DNA of 64,000 bases from Mytilus trossulus (lineage: Eukaryota): NCBI RefSeq assembly GCF_036588685.1, contig NW_026963312.1:372001-436000 (forward strand). Direction: 5' to 3'. Below, one piece after another: positions 8,423 through 20,679 of this stretch (the stretch's first letter is position 1; each line of letters opens with the position of its first letter). A model generated the notes under the pieces. That model saw only the letters and a program-made list of their open reading frames with translations. It was not told where the DNA came from and made no database searches. The position numbers and the translations under genes were made by a program.

Positions 8423-11400
8423 ATGAGGTAAAAGAGAAAACACGATTTCTCTCAAATTTCCCTGTGATATAAGCAAAATATTACCTATTTATTATGATAC
8501 TATTATCCTTAATTGATTTGTTTTATAAATATGTCTCACAAGTTACTTAAATAATATTTTAATGCTTGGTTTTGTTATTTTCAAAGCCGTACTCGACGCA
8601 CATGTTCCCCCTCTTTTACATAATATCGTTGGCATTTAGTTATTACTGAATTAAGCAGTATCTTAACTTAATGCATATTATTGAAGTATCCTATGTTATA
8701 TATCGAGAAGTCGGGAATACTTGTACATGTAACATTTTTGTGCAGACGAGTCCTCAAAGTTTTGTAACACATTTTCCTATTGAATCATACGTTTAAATCT
8801 ACCCATCTGTATTTTTCTGTTAAATTAAATGCCTACAAAATTCACTTCAAGATGCAATGTGGTAAAGTCCAAGGCCTATTTTTGTGCAACATGTTTTGCC
8901 TTTTTTATACGACCGCATTTTATTTCATGTGCAGCCATGACAAAGATTCGTTATTCACTGAGTTTCGTGAAGAGACAATTTTATGGCAGTGTCTGCGCGT
9001 ACCCGCATGCGGGTACGAATAGTCAAATTGCCGTTCTAGGCTGCGCGTACCCACATCCGGTTTTCTAATAAAATGCCATCAAATCGGGAATGAAACGTGA
9101 AATATATCGATATATTATGATAATATATTTAATTTATCGATATTATGGGGATTTCGTGTAGAACGAGTGAAGAATATGAAAAAATAATATTTTCAAATTG
9201 TAATTATTAAATAATGATACATAATAAACATTTCAAAATTAAATGCACAATGATGGAAAATGAAACTGTACAGTCCCTGAAAAGAAAAAAGTAAAAGAAA
9301 ACTACTAAAATTAAAGCTTGAGTTTATAAAATTAAAGAAGCAATTAAGTAATGATATCAATTTAAATCAATTATAAAAGATTCATGTAACTAATTAAGAT
9401 TTGGAACAAATTCTACATATCAAATATGATTGTTTTGGCACAGATTTCAACCCGGCTGCACATTTCAAATGTTGCCAGCCTACGTTCACGTTTCATTATT
9501 CATTATCACTTGCTTCTTTAAACTTTATTTTTTATAAACTCAAGCTCTAATTTTATTGAGTAGTTTTATATATTTTAAAATTTTAGTTTCTGTTTTACAT
9601 TTTACTAAAAGATCATTTTAAAATACCATATGGGTATATTTTTAATTTATAAAAAAAATATTCTTTAAATTTGCATTAAAATTTTGTAATAGTATTAATT
9701 TCTTTCATGTTTTTCTTTTACAGGGACTTTACATTTTCATTTTCCATCATTGTGCATTTAACTTTGCAATGTTTATTATGTATCATTATTTAAAAAATAC
9801 AATTTGAAAATATTATTTTTCATGCTCTTCACTCGTTCTACACGATATCCCCATATTATCGATAATTTCCGTAGATATTTCACGTTTTATACCCGATCCG
9901 ATGGCATTTTATTAGAAAACCAGATGTGGGTACGCGCAGCCTAGAACGGCAATTTGACTATTGACACTGCCCAATTTTATTTTGCATAAGTTCTGTTCAG
10001 ATACCACCCCCCCCCCCCCCCCCCTTTTTACAGCCTTAGTTTGTTTACATTTTTTTAAAACAAATTGGGCATGATCAACAATTTGATAGAGCAAGTCTCT
10101 CAAATGAGTAACATTTTTCTGGTGTTAAAAAAAACTTTCTGAAACATGCTGAACATAATCCAATGGAAAAAAGTAATACTTCTGAATAGTAAATTGATAA
10201 AAAACCTTGAAAAATTATTAATTTTCATGGGAACAAATTTTTTCAAACTTTCGACTCGATCTTTCAAAAAAAAAAAGAGCAGAGCTTGAATTTTATTGAA
10301 AAATTTTACCATCAATCTATAGTGCAGTGGAAACCTTTTTCAAGGCCACTATTCAGTTGCTTGTGGTCAATTTGAGTGTATTTTTTAGATTATCAATCCT
10401 TTTGCTTTCAAGCTCTTCTAAAAAATATTTAATGAATGGCTATTATCTATTTTGAATTTATTGAACCATAAAACTAATTTTTGACTCTTCACATTGAATA
10501 ATCCTTTGCGGATTATGTAAAATGTGAAGAGTCAAAAATTAGTTTTATGGTTCAATAAAGTCAAAATAAATTATTGCCATTCATTATAAATAAATTTCTA
10601 TTAAAATAAGGCTCAAAGAACTTTTTATATTATTTATATTAACAATAACAACGTACACACATGTTGGCGTAAGAATACACATCGTCAGAGTGGGCGTGTC
10701 ACCATCAAAATTGACATCATTGAAAATAAAACTAATAATTTGAACCAATTAGAAGACAATAAAAACACCAAATTTATTTATTTTGAATTAAAAAGTAATC
10801 AGATTTTTTGTGGAAAATATTTTTTTGAGCCAGGTGGGGGAGGGGAAACAAACATATTTTAAATAATTGGCCCTGTCTTCCCTCACTGGCATTCAAACTC
10901 ATGTTATTGAGGATATCAAGCACAGGCACTTGTTTCTGTCAATATGGGGTTTACTATCCATACCAGTACAAAAAAAACACAAGGTAGCTAACGGGAATTT
11001 TCAATGTGATCGCTTCAACCAATATTTTATTACTTTCCCTTGCCCCTTTCACGAATAAAAGTACATCAGTCTTTCGGTAATTGAGTTATCTTTACAATGA
11101 AACAACTCTAACGTACCTTGAGAATACCCCTCAAACAGTATAACCCACTTGAGATGAGAATTATTGACCTTTTTCCAGACCATTGAATTTGGAAGGACTA
11201 AACTTCCGGTTTACTTAGGAAGTTAATAAAACTGTGCAATCCCATTGGTCACATTTTTCTGGTTTCTGGTAACTAGTATAAATAAACAGGTAACCAGATG
11301 AAATCGACCAATCAGATTGCTGTTTTATATTAACTTCCTAAGTAAACCGGAAGTTTAGTACTTCCAAATTCAATGGTCTGGAAAAAGGTCAATAATTCTC

Positions 11401-14400
11401 ATCTCAAGTGTGTTATACTGTTTGAGGGGTATTCTCAAGGTACGTGAGAGTTGTTTCATTGTAAAGATAAATTAATTACCGAAAGACTGGTGTACTTTTA
11501 TTCGTGAAAGGGGCAAGGGAAAGTAATAAAATATTGGTTGAAGCGAACACATTGAAAATTCCCGTTAGCTACCTTGTGTTTTTTTTGGTACTGGTATGGA
11601 TAGTAAACCCCATATTGACAGAAACAAGTGCCTGTGATATCAAGGCACTGCCTGCACCATGTCCATAGCTCTTGGCCGGTTAGACTGAACAAATAATTCA
11701 GCTTTAGGTGGCCTAGTGTTACCTTTCATTGCTATCAGTAGAATGATGTAGTAGGCATGAAGATTGAATTGATTGCAGATTAGCTAAATATTTAAAGATA
11801 CAGTCACAGAATACATGATTTATTAAGTCTAAATGCATTGTCAGATTTAACTCTATTTCTCTGTATGATACTGACAGAAGATAGGTGCAAAAGGAATATT
11901 GAAGGCTTGTTTAAATTGATTTTATTTCTCTATTTTTATAGCACCCTAAGGTTGCAGAAACGGTTGGCCGCAGCCGTTCTCAAATGTGGAAAAAATAAAG
12001 TTTGGTTGGATCCAAATGAAACAAATGAAATAGCAAACGCTAACTCAAGTAAGTTAATTCTAAAAAGATGATTATTAAATGGTAAACAGCTGACTTGAGA
12101 GACAAAGAAATGAAGGTGGCTTTAAGTGAATTATGCTTGTTAAGGCCACTTTTTTTTTATTAGTTGGTTTACGGATCCGCCGACCCTGTTTTTCACGATT
12201 TTGAAATAAAAATAAAAACGATTTTGAAGATTTTTTTTAATTCCGCCGACCTTTTTCTGTTTGAAGAAGTACAAATAAAAATAAAAACATGAATAAAAAA
12301 AGATCGGTCTTTCTTCTTCCAGTCGGAATACCCTCGGAGTGAATTCGGAAATCCTGTGCGGTTCCCTGTTCAGTGAACGTTTCATAATGATCTAATGTGG
12401 TGAAAAGGAACCAGTTGAAAGGCGGTTCCCTGTTCAGTCAACGTTTCATCATGATTTAATGCGGTGAAAAGGAACCAGTTGAAAATGGAGGCAACTTCCA
12501 AGCAAGGACCGAAGCTCATAAACTCGGCAATCAATGTTACACGCAGGACTTCGGGAAAGTTCGGAGAGCCGACAACCTTGCTTCAGAAGTTGAAATGGAG
12601 GACCAGATACGATTTTGATATTGTTGCCTTGGAGATTTTCGGTGTAAATCTTAACGGTTGAACAAATTAAACATCGCAGTCATGAATAATAAAAATGAAA
12701 ATTATTTTTGAGATCATATGGTTTGGAAAGTTTGGTTTAAAAGGTCGAACAACCGCTAATTTGAAACCCTATTTTAGACAGTCAGTGAGGTTGACGGCGG
12801 GTCAACTTTGGTTCAAGTGTTGATCAGAAAGTCTGAAACCCGTCGAAAGGGGTTGTTTTAGTTTCTTGAGGATTGAGCTGCATTTGTCATTACATATATG
12901 AGGTACTAGTCCAAATAATTATGACGTCTGGCAAGGCTTTCTGGCATCCAAGATTTGTTTTAAATAGCCTTGCCAGACGTCACTTATGGGAAGAATCTTT
13001 TAACTTGCTGCCAGGGATGGGTGTCTGATTAATTGGCCTTATTATAAATACCATCCCACCGTACCCATTAAGATTTAATGGAACAGAGATGGGATATGGT
13101 GGACAAGATCCCAACACAAAATCAGAACATGTATTACTGTAATAGAATGCCTGACAATTAAAATCACTTCAACATTTATAAAAAGGGACAATCACAGAAC
13201 ACTTCAAGATATAAGCTTATACTTTATTAATAGCAGTGTAAAATAGCATAAAAAGCCTAAGAAGGACATGTTTTCATGTACCACATATGAAGGTATATGA
13301 CATGCAGAGCGCATATGGTATTTCCTCAATAAGATTGTATTTTGTTATGAGGAATTTTGTCACTCCCTGATCTAAATTTGATAAATAAATACACAGAACA
13401 AAGAGAAATGCAATTGGTAAAGACACTTCCCTTTCATCAGGAACATGGTTTCATCAATCTACATTGACATTGGACTCCTTGTAACACATTAAATTAATTT
13501 AAAACAGCAAGAATCAATACCAAATTATGAAACGATCTGCATACATGTTTAGTACAAAATGCATAATACTATCATATCTATCTATCTATCTTCCGTCAAG
13601 GAGTGGACTCATTTTTGAGTGTATATACTCCAGCAATTATATTACTATTATATAGAGTAATGTCATTGTTTGTTTCTCTTCATTTTTGGTTAAAAAAAAC
13701 CAGTATTAATTCCAATTTTTATTTTTATTTATTTTTCAACCTCCTACCCTACATTTTTTCATTGTTTTTATTTTTATTTTTTTTTCGACCTCCTACCCTT
13801 CCTTTTTTAAGAAGAATCCCGTAAACCAACTAATAAAAAAAAAGTGGCCTAAAGAATATAGGATTGTTAAAAAATGCAAGAAACTCTTTAACTGTCATTC
13901 TCCATTCAATCTGGATTAAACTTGTTAAAAGTCAATGCAAGACAGATATTTTTTAACAAGATGGCTGATTGGTTTGATACTCGCCTTGATTAACTTGTGC
14001 ATACATGTACATGTCGACAAATCAAGTGCTTTAGAAGAAATAGAAACAATCTAAGCTATATAAACATGTGAAGATAAACCTTTAAAGCAGTATTAGTTAA
14101 TATTGAGAATGATGATGAATTATATTTAATGTCTGAACATATGAGAGATTGCAGTGCCTTCATTGCTTTTCTTTGAATCGATCAATATGCCTGAATTCTC
14201 ATAAAATTAACACCTGTCATTTTTTGTGAAACATTCAAGAGACCTGAATCTCACAAAATTATCGTGGATTCTCTGTAGATCAGCAAAAGTTAAACACTTG
14301 CACTCTGAGGAGGTCCAAAAAAGATTTTTGACAAACTTGTTTACTTTGCATATATAATATATATTGAAAGTACACAAAAATAAGTTTTAAATTGATTCAA

Positions 14401-17400
14401 ATGGTCTTTGTTGGTAATACATTGTAACATTCAGCATATGTGTACATTCTAACCCTATCTTAAAACTTGTTGCTAATCAATAAAATGTTGTTGTAGAGGA
14501 TTACCTCTGTCATAAATCATGTCTTTTTGGAATCTGGTGGACTATCAATGTCTTTTAAATAAAGTTGTATCATTTTCGTTTTGGTGAAAAATATTGAACA
14601 TAATTGTACTTTCAATCCTTGTGCAAACATTAAAGAAACATTTTGCCCTCCAGTTGACCATGCAAACCTTTGTAAAGAATAAACATATATATATATATAT
14701 AGAAGTGTAAGCTATGATAGTGATTTACAATTTTGAGAATGATGATGAGTTATATTAAATGTCTGAACATATGAGAAATTGCAGTGCCATCATTGCTCTT
14801 CTATGAATCAATTAATACACCTGAATTCTCACAATTAAAATACAATGTACATGTACCGTTTTCTTGTTAAAGACCCCCAAATTCTTACAAATCACCATGT
14901 TCATGGGAAAAAAAAATACTGCACTTTTGTATCCTGCAATTACCAGGTAACTTTAAACATGTAGTATTATCTACATTTGTTTCAGGACAGAACATCAGAA
15001 AATTGGTAAAAGATGGTTTGATCATCCGTAAACCTGTGGCAGTACACTCCAGAGCTCGTGTAAGGAAAAATGCTCTTGCAAGAAGGAAAGGACGTCACAT
15101 GGGCCATGGTAAAAGGAAGGGTACTGCCAATGCTCGTATGCCTGTCAAAGTTTTATGGATTCGAAGAATGAGAGTCCTGAGAAGATTGTTAAAAAGATAC
15201 AGAGAAGCCAAGAAAATCGACAAGCACTTGTAAGATGATGTTTCATATTAGCACAAATGCTGCTTGTCCTTTCATACACCTAATTATATATAAACATAAG
15301 TGAAAACCAAATTTTTTTTTATAATGGTCATAAGTGCATTTACAAAATGTATAATATAGACAAACTTGATTATTGTATAATATAGATTTTGTAATTACAA
15401 TAATCAAGTTTGTCTATATCTGATTTGACCAAATAGTAAATTGTATCTATGTATCATTTAAAAAGCAGGAACTTATCAAAGTGCTGTTGAAAAGCAAGCA
15501 TTGAACCTTCCATGTTATGTATAGATGTATGCATGGCAATATTTGTTAATGTGGAGAGTTATGATGAGTTTTGTCTCGTTCGTATGAGGAAATGCAGTGG
15601 TAACATTGTTATTTTCTTTGAATCAACCTAGACAGCTGAACTCTATCAATACTGCCAAGAAATTTTAAAAATGGAAGTGAGGACAACCTTAACTAATGCT
15701 AATCAGTTATGTTACCCATCAGCTTTTAACACAACCAAAATTAGTTCCATTACAGAATGATTTTTAACCTGGTCTTTACTGACTAGCCTTGAGTGCATTG
15801 ACATTTTTTTGACATGGTTAAGGTACCAAAAGAAATATAGTAATTAAGAGTTTTATCACTTTTTATCAAACTGTGTCCCAGTAATTCACTATTAAAAGAA
15901 ACACATTAGAAAAAAGTTCGATTATTGGTCTTTAGACTGATAGTTTGAAATTATGGACTTTTGTACAGACAACCTTCACTGCTTTAGATCTGTACTGTAT
16001 ATCAAATGATTTTTGTCAGATTACATTCAGGCTTTGGTAATTTTAATAAGTTTCAAAAGCAGGGGAAAACCCAAGACCAATCAAATTGTAATGCTTTAAT
16101 AGATAACCAATCATTGCTGTGTTTGTCAATAATGTGAGTGATGATGAGTTTTTGTCTCGTTCGTATGAGAAATTGCAGTGGAAACATTGTTATTTCTTTG
16201 AATCAATCAAGACACCTGAACTCTTAAAAATTCGAAACTGCACAAAAGTTTACAGAATGGAAAGGTGAACAACCTTAACAAATGCTAAACAATTATGTTA
16301 CCCAACAGCTTTTAAAACAACTTAAATAAGTTCCATTACAGAATGATTTTTAACCTGGTTTAAACTGACTAGCCTTGAGTGCATTGAACCTGGTTTTTTT
16401 TTACAGTTTTATTAAAGGTACCAAAAGAAAAATAGTAAATCAGAGTTTTATCAATTTTATCGAACTGTTTCCCTGTAATTCATCTAATGGCTAATTAACC
16501 AAAGAAATACATTAGAAAATTGTTCGAATGTTGGTCTTGAGACTAGTACTTCTAGTAAATTGAAAAGATTTTGGTGCAGACAGCCTACACTGCTCTAGAT
16601 CTGTACTGTACATCAAATTGCTATGCTTTAATAGATTAACACTCATTGCCGTGTCTGTCAAAATTGTGAGTAATGATGAGTTTTTGTCTCGTTCGTATGA
16701 GAAAGTGCAATGGAAACATTGTTTCTTTCTTTGAATCAACCTAGACACCTGAACTCCCACAAATTGACTTGAGTACACTTATTGAATATGAATTAGTTTC
16801 TTGTGTAGCTTTATTGGTTTACATGTACCACATCAAAATTTCCAACAAAACTCACTATTTGTAGTTAGGTTATCATGGTTATGAAGTGTTGCGCTTTTTG
16901 TTTGATGATTGTAGTGTTAAATAAGCACTTGTCTGTTGTTAAAGGCCTTTTGCATACCTTTTTAGCTCACTGTTCCAAAGGAGCTTTAGCCATCACTTGT
17001 CGTTGTCATCTGTCAGGTGTAAACTATAAATTTATGTAACTTATTTATATATATTATTGGAGATATTGCAGCCTTTTCAATCTAAATATTAATAAAATAA
17101 AATGACATATTGTGAGTGATGATGAGTTTTTGTCTCGTTCGTATGAGAAAGTGCAGTGGCAACACTTGTTATTTTCTGTGAATCAACCTAGACACCTGAA
17201 CTCTACATTATATTTTCTTTAAATCAATTAAGACCCATGCAAGCCACATTTGACTTTCTATGAAACAATCAAGACACATGAACCTTAAAAAAGGATGAAA
17301 GGTGCTATTATTAGTACAATATAATACAAACTTAATTAATTTGATGCTGTATATACTTTACCCAATTCAAAGACAAAAATGTTCAATTTTATCCACAATG

Positions 17401-17835
17401 ATTTCAGAGAATTTTAGTATGATGTAACATAATTAATGACCTCTTTGCTCATTAGAGTTTCACGCAATTCAAATTCAAATATTTTCTAATAGATTTCAGA
17501 GAAATTTTGATCAATGTCACTTAATGAATTGCCTATATTTATTGCAGTTCTACATGTAATTTTATGAAGTTTTAAAATGTTCTGCTTTATTTTTTAGGTA
17601 CCATGAATTATACATGAAATGTAAAGGTAACGGTTTCAAGAATAAACGTGTCTTGATGGAACATATTCACAAGAGGAAGGCAGAAAAGAACAGAAGCAAA
17701 GTTCTCAGTGACCAAGCAGAGGCTAGAAGAACGAGAGTCAAGGAGGCTCGTAAGCGTCGTGAGGAGCGTATCAAAACAAAGAAGGAAGAACTGCTCAAAT
17801 CTTTCTCTGAAAAGGAAGAACCTGCTAAGAAATAA
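8423..17835 (+). CDS. RPL19: 60S ribosomal protein L19 (eL19); exons 8423-8427, 11942-12048, 14986-15229, 17598-17835; 197 aa
   Basis: Joined exons (5+107+244+238=594 nt) read [51 protein letters not shown]...[12 protein letters not shown]...[30 protein letters not shown]...PAKK*. All introns GT-AG and in phase. Confidence 0.98.
8985..9971. mobile_element. Long-TIR (MULE-like) MITE in RPL19 intron 1
   Basis: GGCAGTGTC...GACACTGCC ends, inverted arms of roughly 250-300 bp, exact 9-bp TSD CAATTTTAT (8976-8984, 9972-9980). Confidence 0.85.
10431..10585. repeat. Palindrome of about 155 bp
   Basis: AATGAATGGC...TTGACTCTTCACATT mirrored by AATGTGAAGAGTCAA...GCCATTCATT. Confidence 0.8.
10921..11636. 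mobile_element. Foldback element (P/Galileo-like termini) in RPL19 intron 1
   Basis: Near-perfect inverted arms of about 305 bp starting CACAGGCACTTGT, more degenerate centre, exact 8-bp TSD ATATCAAG (10913-10920, 11637-11644). Confidence 0.85.
12144..13849. mobile_element. Non-autonomous DNA transposon with TAA TSD (PIF/Harbinger- or Zator-like) in RPL19 intron 2
   Basis: TIR GGCCACTTTTTTTTT(T)ATTAGTTGGTTTACGG at both ends; TAA at 12141-12143 and 13850-13852. Confidence 0.8.
12492..12592. mobile_element. 101-bp MITE nested in the 12144-13849 element
   Basis: TIR CAACTTC.AAGCAAGG / CCTTGCTTC.GAAGTTG; 9-bp TSD AAATGGAGG. Confidence 0.85.
14104..14201 (+). ncRNA. SNORD72: Box C/D snoRNA A1, SNORD72-like; predicted guide for 28S rRNA Um (human U4590 old / U4620 new numbering)
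   Basis: Terminal stem TGAGAAT/ATTCTCA, C box ATGATGA 14112-14118, antisense AATGTCTGAAC complementary to 28S GUUCAGACAUU, D' ATGA 14141-14144, D box CTGA 14191-14194; in RPL19 intron 2, sense strand. Confidence 0.85.
14734..14831 (+). ncRNA. SNORD72: Box C/D snoRNA A2, SNORD72-like (same 28S target)
   Basis: Stem TGAGAAT/ATTCTCA, C box 14742-14748, 12-nt antisense AAATGTCTGAAC, D' ATGA 14771-14774, D box CTGA 14821-14824. Confidence 0.87.
15555..15644 (+). ncRNA. Box C/D snoRNA B1; predicted guide for 18S rRNA Am (human A1383 equivalent)
   Basis: Stem AGAGT/ACTCT, C box 15561-15567, antisense GTCTCGTTCGT 15573-15583 complementary to 18S ACGAACGAGAC, D' ATGA 15584-15587, D box CTGA 15636-15639; RPL19 intron 3. 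Confidence 0.85.
16136..16223 (+). ncRNA. Box C/D snoRNA B2 (18S Am1383-equivalent guide)
   Basis: Stem GAGT/ACTC, C box 16141-16147, guide 16154-16164, D' 16165-16168, D box 16216-16219. Confidence 0.85.
16668..16756 (+). ncRNA. Box C/D snoRNA B3 (18S Am1383-equivalent guide)
   Basis: Stem GAGT/ACTC, C box 16673-16679, guide 16686-16696, D' 16697-16700, D box 16749-16752. Confidence 0.85.
17114..17203 (+). ncRNA. Box C/D snoRNA B4 (18S Am1383-equivalent guide)
   Basis: Stem GAGT/ACTC, C box 17119-17125, guide 17132-17142, D' 17143-17146, D box 17196-17199. Confidence 0.85.
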
Positions 17836-17836
17836 A
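17831..17836 (+). terminator. Candidate poly(A) signal AATAAA overlapping the RPL19 stop codon
   Basis: AAA TAA A at 17830-17836 followed by T-rich sequence. Further AATAAA hexamers lie near 17916 and 17941. Confidence 0.5.
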
Positions 17837-20679
17837 GACAGTGCTCTTAACTTATTTCATCTCTTCATTTTGTCTATATCTTCATAGTCATTTCACCATG
17901 AAAACAAACTACAAAAATAAAACAAAAACACAGTCAAATGAATAAAAAGTTGCTTTAAAAGGGTAAATGGAAATGTAGGTTATGCATCAGTGAGAAAGCA
18001 ATAGAATGACGCTTAAACTGACACTCGAATAAATCAATCTTTAAAAAAATCAGTTAATGCTAGACTTGAAAAATCTGCAAGATGCACTGTGTCAATAAGA
18101 CCGCAAGAAATTGTTGACAAAAGACCAGAAAAAATCACCACAGGAGTTTAACACTGAACAAGAGCCTATACAGTACATCAGGTGGTTTATTTCAACTCTC
18201 GGTTGTGCTTTATGATGGTGATAATACATGTAGATCACTCTGAAATATTGTGTATTTAAGATGTTTTGCCTTGTAAAAAAATATTCCCTTGTCAACCTTC
18301 TCCAGGAAGACAATCATCTAGATCACTTAAATATTCTTCTGTATATTAAGCAAATAATGCATTATAAATAAATAATTCCCTTGTCAACCTTAACAAGCAA
18401 GCAATGTTAAAAGTTGGAAATCCAAAATAATCTATGAAACAATTGTTTGATGAATTCCAGTAGCAAATATTTCATGCTCATTCAGAACTACAACAAATAT
18501 TAGATGGTAGGTTTGACAAACAGGGAGGGATTGAAATGCAAGCAGGATAAGATATAGTTTGTCAGATACAATGTATATGGCAGAAAAACAAAAAATGTTC
18601 CCTACTCAAACTGAACACGGTTGTGAATCATTAGCAGTATCAGACTGAATACTGGATCATTAAATACGTGTAGATTTGAAGATTTAAAACCAAAATAACT
18701 ATTCTTATCTGAGTTAAAAAAAATTAAGAACTTTATAACATTTATCAACCGAATATGAAATTACGAGGCATCTAAAATGTTTTTTGTGTGATTGGAGGCT
18801 GCATGGTAGCATTTGTTAACTTTCATCTTTGGGTTCTTTATATGCAGCTTTTGTTGCAGAAAGCTCTACATGGGGATAGTGATCCGGTGGTGGCAGTGTT
18901 GGCTAACTTTTTAGAAGGTAGAAGACCTGGATGCTTCATACTTTGTCTATATATGACTCATGTTACGAAGTTTCTGTCTGTTACATGTCCAATGTATTTT
19001 CATGGTTCAGTGGTAAGTTTTTGTCTGTTTTTCATATACTGAATGCAGTAGGTCTATATTTGGTGTATGGAAAGAATGTAAGGTGTACATCTCTAGCTGG
19101 TAGGTGTCGTCTTACCAGACTCGATTGCTTGACCTTATTTTCATGGTTCAGTGGTCAAAATTAAATATTTGAGTTTTGTTCTTGTAGTATCATACTATAT
19201 TTGGTGTATGGAAATATTTTATGATCTATATGTCGGTCACTCTGATTTAATTTGACCTTGACATCAATATTCATACCATAAAGTAGAAGGTTTGGATTTA
19301 ATTTAAGGGTTATTGGGCAAACAGTCTAGGAATTAAACACCAAAAACAAGCATTTTGATACGAACGCGGAACAATAACTAATCGATCTTTCTGACATTGT
19401 ACCACAAGGTTCAATATAACGAAGGAAAGGCTTTAATTAGGTTCGAGGTAAACATCCCTGAATATTTAGAAAAAAGGGCCCATAAGAAGCATTTTTCTAG
19501 TTTACAGGCAATTACTTGTGTTTATCTCTGAAATTATACTTCAAAGGAAAGGATGGAATTGAGTCTTGCTCCAAGGTTGAGGGGGGGGGGGGGGGTCAAC
19601 AAGTGAGGGCCCAAATAAGCACTTTTGTAGTTCAGTCAATAACTTGTGTTCAAGTATAAAAATCTTCCTCAAATTATACTACAAAGGGATAGTCTTGGGG
19701 GGGTTATGGCGCAAATCATTTAGCAATTAGGGGGAACACGAGGGTTTTTCTGTTAAAAGGACAATTTAAATGCTATAAAAGCAGTGTAAGGAAGGAATTG
19801 CAGTTAAAATTTATAGACTGATATATATGTTAAAATTACTTGATTACCTCCCGTACACTGCTTGTTATCAAAAGTTTCAAGAAGAAATCTCAGATTGTGC
19901 AATAGATTTGTAAGATCTTTGACCACATTTATTTTGTGACAAAAACTTGTATTATGTCATTTTTTTTTATCACAAACCCAAATTCAGACAGTATCAAGCT
20001 TGAATATAGTGCCCAACTGATCAGGGTTCAACCACTAAGGTCGTATAAAGATGTGCCGTGCGGATCACTTGGTTGTTTGTATCATTTGATGCGTATCAGA
20101 TTGCAAGACATGACGATAACGATTCAATGGTGTAAACAGTTTGTAGATTTCCTGGATGCTTCATTTATTGTATGCAAACGACTTACGTTGAGCAGTATCT
20201 CTCTTGTGACCATTGTCATTGATTTTTATTAAGGTTTACCTTTGTCTGTAAGTTGCAAAATTGCATTAACTTTAGTTTGCTTCGACCAAATGTTTATAAT
20301 GAAACTTGTACACAATGCTTTATACCACAATCCACCGGTCAATTTCGAATATTGGTGAGCCGTCATTTTTACAGTTCTTCAGTAATGTCTCTTTATAACA
20401 TTTATGCTTGTAGCAACGGTCACCTATATTTGGTGTATTTTTGTTGTATTGCAGGGTTGACTTCGATGTCATTTTTATTTTCCATTGGTCAATGTTCTAT
20501 TTTCTGAATGACGGTTATTTCTTGAATACATGCACACACAATATCTAATAATTTCCCAATCTAATTAAAATTAAATCCTTTAATTGCTCCTGTTCTGATA
20601 TGTCGCGATTTTATTTTACTAGATTGATAATTTCTCTATATGGCATAATTAATAAGGTAGGCGAGACTTGGCCCTAACA

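Follow-up and report, generated by a model that had tools for sequence, protein, structure and literature searches.

Six box C/D small nucleolar RNA genes of one family in two introns of Mytilus trossulus RPL19, with a guide likely re-aimed from 28S to 18S ribosomal RNA

We analyzed a 64,000-nucleotide stretch of the Mytilus trossulus genome (contig NW_026963312.1, positions 372,001 to 436,000; hereafter the window, with positions counted from its first letter). Two neighbouring introns of the ribosomal protein gene RPL19 in this window hold six elements resembling small nucleolar RNAs (snoRNAs), which share one scaffold and carry two different guides. They are referred to below as class A (two copies, intron 2) and class B (four copies, intron 3). 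On balance, we consider it probable that these are six box C/D snoRNA genes, encoded in introns and belonging to one family, and that a class A guide for the 28S ribosomal RNA (rRNA) was re-aimed to become a class B guide for the 18S rRNA. This reading draws on box architecture, complementarity to rRNA, register, paralogy and constraint, all of which are seen in the sequence itself. The six elements are ∼92-99 bases long each, all lie on the plus strand, and span 14104-17207:

A1, 14104-14201, plus strand, intron 2: C box 14112-14118, guide core 14128-14140, D' box ATGA 14141-14144, D box 14191-14194; R1 score 100.9 bits
A2, 14733-14831, plus strand, intron 2: C box 14742-14748, guide core 14758-14770, D' box 14771-14774, D box 14821-14824; R1 score 103.6 bits
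B1, about 15552-15645, plus strand, intron 3: C box 15561-15567, guide core 15573-15583, D' box 15584-15587, D box 15636-15639; R1 score 110.5 bits
B2, about 16133-16224, plus strand, intron 3: C box 16141-16147, guide core 16154-16164, D' box 16165-16168, D box 16216-16219; R1 score 124.7 bits
B3, about 16664-16761, plus strand, intron 3: C box 16673-16679, guide core 16686-16696, D' box 16697-16700, D box 16749-16752; R1 score 118.8 bits
B4, about 17110-17207, plus strand, intron 3: C box 17119-17125, guide core 17132-17142, D' box 17143-17146, D box 17196-17199; R1 score 111.9 bits

All six copies have the same order of elements, that is, the C box ATGATGA, a guide slot, TATGAG with the D' box ATGA, a hairpin, the C' box TGAATC, a variable stretch of 11 bases, the D box CTGA, and the terminal stem. 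The C box ATGATGA and the D box CTGA, as expected of box C/D snoRNAs, are present in 6/6 copies. The same is true of the internal boxes, D' ATGA and C' TGAATC, which are degenerate yet retain their GA dinucleotides and are bridged by a conserved hairpin, TGCAGTG....CATTG, lengthened by GAGAA/TTCTT pairs. In the six-way alignment, 55 of the 112 columns are invariant and the mean column identity is 81%; the invariant blocks are ATGATGA, TATGAG, TGCA.TG...CA.TTG, TGAATC, and CTGAA. Both the terminal and the internal stem were recovered by RNAalifold. Four pairs of the terminal stem are retained in all six copies, one of them through compensation, with A-U in class A and G-C in class B; in addition, one G-U pair of the hairpin has become A-U in B3. 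A covariance model built from the six copies with both stems (R1) assigned them 100.9-124.7 bits, the next plus-strand matches having 15.2 and 14.7 bits (window 9000-20000, filters off). Hence, the alignment and the R1 scores bear out the initial annotation of this DNA, which had placed here six C/D snoRNAs with a C box, D' ATGA, hairpin, TGAATC, and CTGA.

To assign targets, we scanned all twelve candidate guide elements, ungapped and in the register in which the fifth base upstream of the D or D' box faces the modified nucleotide (D+5), against the 18S and 28S rRNA of the same genome. The guide core is AATGTCTGAACAT in both A copies and GTCTCGTTCGT in all four B copies, and both target strings are present in the genome's own rRNA. 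In class A, the fifth base upstream of D' faces U3376 of the 28S rRNA, with 11 Watson-Crick pairs for A1, and 13 Watson-Crick and two G-U pairs for A2. U3376 is the second U of GGUUCAGACAUUU, which adjoins the 3' side of the sarcin-ricin loop AGUACGAGAGGAAC, and, as read from the sequence, it is the SNORD72 site. In class B, the D'+5 position falls on A1343 of the 18S rRNA, with 11 Watson-Crick pairs in each of the four copies. A1343 is the second A of CGAACGAGAC, and from the sequence context and the relative position (1343 of 1825), rather than from an alignment with human rRNA, we infer that it is the equivalent of human Am1383. Both classes thus carry an antisense element of at least 10 bases next to a D or D' box with the target at the fifth base. 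Shuffled 20-base guide windows equalled the observed run in 1/2000 cases for A and in 8/2000 cases for B.

The guide slots of the two classes share GTT...TGTCT, and GUCU pairs with AGAC, which is common to both targets. The D'-proximal bases differ (GAACAT in A vs CGTTCGT in B), and the B slot is five bases shorter. No terminal D box guide had an rRNA run of at least eight pairs in register, except for a weak eight-pair run (six Watson-Crick) for B1, and the stretch before the terminal D box also varies between copies. Because these stretches have no comparable rRNA match and vary between copies, they appear to be non-guiding, and we treat the elements as probable single-guide snoRNAs. The initial annotation had proposed both rRNA sites, the SNORD72 site of the 28S rRNA for A and the second A of GAAC in the 18S rRNA for B; both were hit in register, and its account needs correction in that the stretch before the D box differs between copies, too. 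CTGA inside the A guide was considered as an alternative D' box and rejected, as A1 and A2 disagree in the bases that precede it, and ATGA reproduces the SNORD72 register.

Outside the guides, the A and B copies remain recognizably similar. In a self-BLAST of both introns, each A copy aligned with B copies at 68-75% identity over 104-124 bases (E from 1.7e-4 to 3e-14). For a shuffle test, the boxes were cut out and five segments were compared, namely the upstream stem, the guide slot, the D'-C' hairpin, the stretch before the D box, and the downstream stem. In each of the five, the A-B scores exceeded all 2000 shuffles, with z of 4.65-11.79, values that are generous, as the B copies are not independent. 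The guide region is similar in its 5' part, too (z 4.66, 0/2000 shuffles). With the guide slot excluded, copies of different classes are 71-82% identical, as against 87-91% for A copies and 82-90% for B copies among themselves; the B copy closest to the A copies is B2 (80-82%). A maximum-likelihood tree of twelve copies, including those of a second locus described below, comprises an A clade and a B clade, each with support 100/99, and is rooted at the midpoint. Since BLAST, shuffles, and the tree agree on similarity outside the boxes and the guide, A and B are, on this evidence, one paralogous family with one guide replacement between the clades; the scaffolds did not prove unrelated, and the paralogy proposed initially holds.

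The same six copies occur in the same order at a second RPL19 locus of the genome, G000:C11:50962865-50968769 (the C11 copy). It is collinear with the window at 91-98% identity, with kilobase insertions and deletions, and is either an allelic haplotig or a recent segmental duplication. Between the two loci, there are no changes at the 160 positions of boxes and guide cores, six changes at the 415 other snoRNA positions (five in A copies and one in a B copy), one in the 244 positions of exon 3, and 98 in 2709 intron positions, with 166 gap columns in addition. The difference from the intron is significant both for the snoRNAs (Fisher p 0.00057) and for boxes and guides (p 0.0059). B4 is identical in the C11 copy, and the C' box of A1 reads TGAATG there. 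Within the array, the flanks of A1 and A2 and those of B4 can no longer be aligned, with the snoRNAs still 88-92% alike; B1 and B2 share ∼500 bases of their unit at 79% identity, and B2 and B3 share ∼50 upstream bases. These data support the earlier proposals that guides stay constant within each class (2/2 and 4/4 cores) as flanks drift and that both states are preserved together, the latter also in view of the compensated stem pair.

Further sequences of the locus come from sequencing runs aligned to the window as contigs. Contigs under four organism labels match parts of the locus at ≥85% identity and together cover both classes; all six copies are covered only by runs X1 and X17, and the coverage by X5 and X20 is partial. 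The 40 of 155 letter differences that were listed (13947-15792) leave the guide cores and boxes of A1, A2, and B1 unaffected. Just past the D box (window 15638-15645), the 3' end of B1 in the window is 12 bases shorter than in the C11 copy, X1, and X17, in which these 12 bases yield a longer terminal stem. One X5 contig (organism B) skips 591 bases at 15801-16393, corresponding to one B repeat unit, which suggests copy-number variation, with three B copies instead of four.

We then compared the two classes with known families using Infernal and Rfam. Class A resembled SNORD72 (RF00577), with 28.1 bits for A1 and 25.0 bits for A2, below the gathering score of 43. In A2, the guide together with D' coincides letter for letter with the Rfam SNORD72 consensus UAAAUGUCUGAACAUAUGA, including AUGA, and A1 differs from it by one base. 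For class B, the sole related match was that of plant snoU30 (RF01283) to B2, at 19.4 bits and a gathering score of 45; in this weak alignment, UCUCGUU of B2 lies at the consensus distance from D'. RF00088 (gathering score 40) matched no B copy, and had one weak match on the other strand (16435-16490). RF00330 was not listed at E ≤10 for the window. The initial annotation had related A to SNORD72 and B to SNORD30: the resemblance of A stands, at sub-threshold scores, and B does not fall in the SNORD30 family.

In a published table, 28S Gm4618 is listed under SNORD91 and Um4620 under SNORD72; an excerpt of an earlier text gives the SNORD72 target in the older numbering, U4590, and an excerpt of another assigns SNORD72 a different target, U55 of the 5.8S rRNA, at odds with the other sources. 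Placed in register, the G opposite the SNORD91 consensus lies two bases upstream of the class A target U. Class A is similar to SNORD72 (RF00577; HBII-240) in the guide, the D' context (that of A2), and the target nucleotide predicted by register, as well as in having a single 5' (D') guide and residing in an intron of a ribosomal protein gene. It differs from SNORD72 in the host, RPL19 rather than RPL37 (the human host according to a source excerpt), in having two copies per locus, in length (∼98 nt vs 80 model positions), and in the longer D'-C' hairpin.

For the 18S site, the excerpts list Am1383 under SNORD30, while the classical target of U30 is 28S Am3804. According to the same partial sources, 18S-1383 was an orphan in human until 2016, when it was assigned to SNORD30 via chimeras from crosslinking and immunoprecipitation, and its Arabidopsis equivalent is methylated (Am1327/Am1330) and assigned to AtsnoR32. 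Like SNORD30/U30 (RF00088, RF01283) and plant AtsnoR32 (RF00330), class B is predicted to address this ancient 18S site. Unlike SNORD30/U30, it has a dedicated 11-pair guide on a SNORD72-like scaffold and no family membership. The B snoRNA is therefore predicted to be a functional analogue of the SNORD30/AtsnoR32 guides and not a member of their families.

Under the preferred reading, the snoRNAs would be released from the RPL19 pre-mRNA and assembled into small nucleolar ribonucleoproteins, each with a single guide upstream of D' AUGA. The two class A copies would direct 2'-O-methylation of 28S U3376, and the four class B copies, methylation of 18S A1343. The two classes would go back to a duplication in the host gene, after which about seven D'-proximal guide bases were rewritten and the slot became five bases shorter, with the pairing of GUCU to AGAC of both targets kept through the switch. 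The B form would then have been amplified by tandem duplication of ∼0.5-0.6 kb units. As to the direction, A to B is clearly favoured, albeit not proven, because two characters not forced by the target, the unusual AUGA D' box and a mismatched A two bases before D', are common to A and the SNORD72 consensus; B carries the same AUGA D' as A. A micro-inversion (GAAC to GTTC) was also considered as the route of the switch, but it saves at most one step over point changes and was given no weight.

The host was identified by exon 3, whose 80-residue peptide (14988-15227), searched alone, matched 371 proteins at E ≤1e-20; some of these are named ribosomal protein L19e in their source, and the domains are Pfam PF25476 and, in part, PF01280. 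Exon 2 and the last coding exon have clean translations, which we take by eye to be L19e, and the last one closes with a stop codon. The layout is as follows:

11942-12048, plus strand: RPL19 exon 2, from its translation; the 3' end is joined to exon 3 in loose read ends
12049-14985, plus strand: RPL19 intron 2, carrying A1 and A2
14986-15229, plus strand: RPL19 exon 3, from the peptide search, separating the A-bearing from the B-bearing intron
15230-17597, plus strand: RPL19 intron 3, carrying B1-B4
17598-17835, plus strand: last coding exon of RPL19 including the stop codon, from its translation and the splice joint from exon 3

Two small runs (X1 and X5) are RNA-seq-like, with an exon depth of 1e4-1e5 vs ∼10 in introns, and RPL19 is highly expressed and spliced in them. 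The splice joint of intron 3 in such runs connects 15229 to 17598 with GT..AG borders, and can be placed up to three letters further on. The exon 3 search and the splice joints agree with RPL19 as the host, the A pair in intron 2, and the B quartet in intron 3, as annotated initially, and correct the end of exon 3, which stops at 15229. Two and four snoRNAs thus lie within single introns of RPL19. In vertebrates, one snoRNA per intron is the habit.

Searches for other carriers covered the genome and metagenomic RPL19 loci. In the 1.3-Gb genome, R1 yielded nothing else convincing (150 of 463,219 first-look candidates scored); a single match of 34.8 bits had no C box. The B guide followed by an NTGA box has 11 matches in the genome: the two loci account for eight of these with their B copies, and a C box is missing from the remaining three. 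A looser genome pattern with a CTGA box gave eight matches, none with a C box, and a looser guide pattern was uninformative (219 matches vs 194 in the control). Genome-wide, RF00088 had no matches at E ≤10 (65 of 283,968 candidates scored), and RF00577 had one boxless match of 32.7 bits. As the A copies themselves were not listed in the latter scan, its first-look filter is lossy. No redundant guide for either site was found in these lossy genome scans. For outgroups, an alignment of 19 exon-3 peptides was searched against metagenomes, yielding 80 RPL19 exon-3 loci, many of which are ∼1 kb long or cDNA-like and of unknown taxa, and say little. Among them, R1 had nine matches at E ≤10, the best of 23.6 bits, none snoRNA-like with an A or B guide, and the 9-base guide cores occurred five times, never beside a box.

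Several observations weigh against the reading of the array as a snoRNA family re-aimed from A to B. A scan of the whole window at the Rfam gathering scores had no match. The D' (AUGA) and C' (UGAAUC) boxes are both off consensus. The B duplex has only 11 pairs, a run that the 8/2000 shuffles mentioned above attain. The change rate of boxes and guides does not differ significantly from that of the rest of the snoRNA (p 0.19), and the direction is argued from two unforced characters shared with one Rfam consensus. The intron depth (∼10) is flat, with no peak over the snoRNAs, in contigs that cannot show a stable small RNA. Finally, neither class was found in any of the 80 metagenome RPL19 loci, mostly short and of unknown taxa.

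The alternative that survives best, although we consider it unlikely, keeps the family and both functions and reverses the switch. A B-like guide for 18S A1343 would then be ancestral, and one copy, re-aimed to 28S U3376, would have converged on the SNORD72 guide. The window offers no root for the tree, which is rooted at its midpoint. The B copies are more numerous and more constrained, with one change in four B copies vs five in two A copies between the loci, and the 18S site is ancient, being shared with plants according to the source excerpts. Two decayed copies also have a bearing on the direction:

14228-14262, plus strand: 3' half of an additional, decayed copy, located downstream of A1 and aligning weakly with the 3' halves of B2 and A2
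17213-17291, plus strand: decayed partial copy downstream of B4, matched in part by R1 (17213-17281, 14.7 bits, E 0.23)

The first was picked up neither by BLAST at E 1e-3 nor by R1 on the plus strand; for the second, BLAST aligned 16193-16230 with 17255-17291 at 89% over 38 bases. In the 3' halves of both relics (14228-14262 and 17255-17291), including the one beside A1, the stretch before the D box resembles that of B2, as a B-like ancestor would have it. The relics indicate that copies have been born and have died within the array. On the other hand, A matches vertebrate SNORD72 in the AUGA D' and the mismatched A, that is, beyond the forced guide, and the Rfam snoU30 consensus has the canonical CUGA at D'. 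Convergence on all these characters is less parsimonious than the inheritance of AUGA by B from an A-like parent.

It is also conceivable, but improbable, that some or all B copies are inactive duplicates, with an 11-base match to the 18S rRNA that is fortuitous or aimed at another RNA. The frequency of 11-pair runs in shuffles (8/2000) leaves room for this, and, by hand pairing, the B guide also matches AACGAGA of the 28S rRNA (position 2643) with seven Watson-Crick pairs and one G-U pair. Moreover, the decayed relics mean that copies do die, and one run is without one B unit. However, the guide and all boxes are identical in the four paralogs and at both loci, with flanks beyond alignment, the terminal stem is maintained by a compensatory change, and the guide hits in exact D'+5 register a site reported, in the excerpts seen, as methylated in human and Arabidopsis. 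Least probable of all is the explanation that A and B are unrelated snoRNAs in neighbouring introns, their scaffolds homogenized by gene conversion and their guides protected by selection: the location of the copies within 3.1 kb on one strand favours conversion, and similarity is restricted to the snoRNA bodies, but conversion requires prior similarity, the A-B identity of 71-82% is below that within classes, the copies form two clean clades with no mixing by position, and the similarity extends into the 5' part of the guide region.

Returning to the preferred reading, a re-aimed class A guide could have had a further consequence. We tentatively suggest, as a possibility somewhat short of probable, that the methylation equivalent to 18S Am1383 was taken over by a re-aimed SNORD72 copy. 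This would be a non-orthologous guide displacement, with both forms kept in neighbouring introns, AGAC as the retained anchor, and seven D'-proximal bases rewritten.

The locus has several other features. In intron 2, a segment of ∼1.7 kb (12137-13856) is bounded by 38-base inverted repeats (12137-12174 vs 13856-13819, 94.7% identity) and is absent from the C11 copy, the alignment jumping between 12143 and 13850; the segment resembles an inserted transposon with terminal inverted repeats. Upstream of exon 2, there is a long inverted repeat with arms of ∼250-300 bases (∼10980-11590), foldback-like by eye. Between exon 3 and B1, intron 3 contains a near-palindrome of 66 bases (15354-15419) with 86.6% self-complementarity. 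A weak match to snoMe28S-G3255 at 17413-17504 (25.4 bits, E 8.3) lacks a convincing D box and probably does not represent a snoRNA. This region is flanked by a direct repeat, and one X1 contig steps back by 36 there, from 17458 to 17423, so that a short tandem duplication near 17423-17458 may be polymorphic.

snoRNA guides are regarded as evolvable address labels on a constant scaffold, and clear examples are uncommon in which the old and the new address persist together on scaffolds that are still plainly alike. Human and plants use different snoRNA families at the 18S site, and a third, unrelated solution here would support frequent guide turnover. If the displacement is true, the array would provide a natural before-and-after pair for the question of how a new guide passes through non-functional intermediates. 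R1 and the two guide motifs could be used to trace the switch across mollusc genomes. A literature search at the level of listings revealed no snoRNAs in mollusc RPL19 introns and no bivalve rRNA methylation map, nor a map of snoRNAs or methylation for lophotrochozoan-type genomes.

Guide switching as such has been described. In fungi, target switches among snoRNA paralogs have been reported for clans CD_5/CD_19 (PMC5824354). In Xenopus, SNORA58 (28S) and SNORA58-like (18S) reside in one host gene, and the process has been called “antisense element shuffling” (PMC6984369), while chicken has cis-duplicates with new guides (PMC2653536). The RPL19 array is a clean new instance of this known process, crossing ribosomal subunits. 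As in the fungal, Xenopus, and chicken switches, the scenario combines duplication in the host gene with a changed antisense element, so that one scaffold serves different rRNA sites, and, as in the published excerpts, the family that serves an old site differs between lineages. Unlike those cases, both states here occupy adjacent introns, only the D'-proximal part of the guide is rewritten, and the genome is of the lophotrochozoan type.

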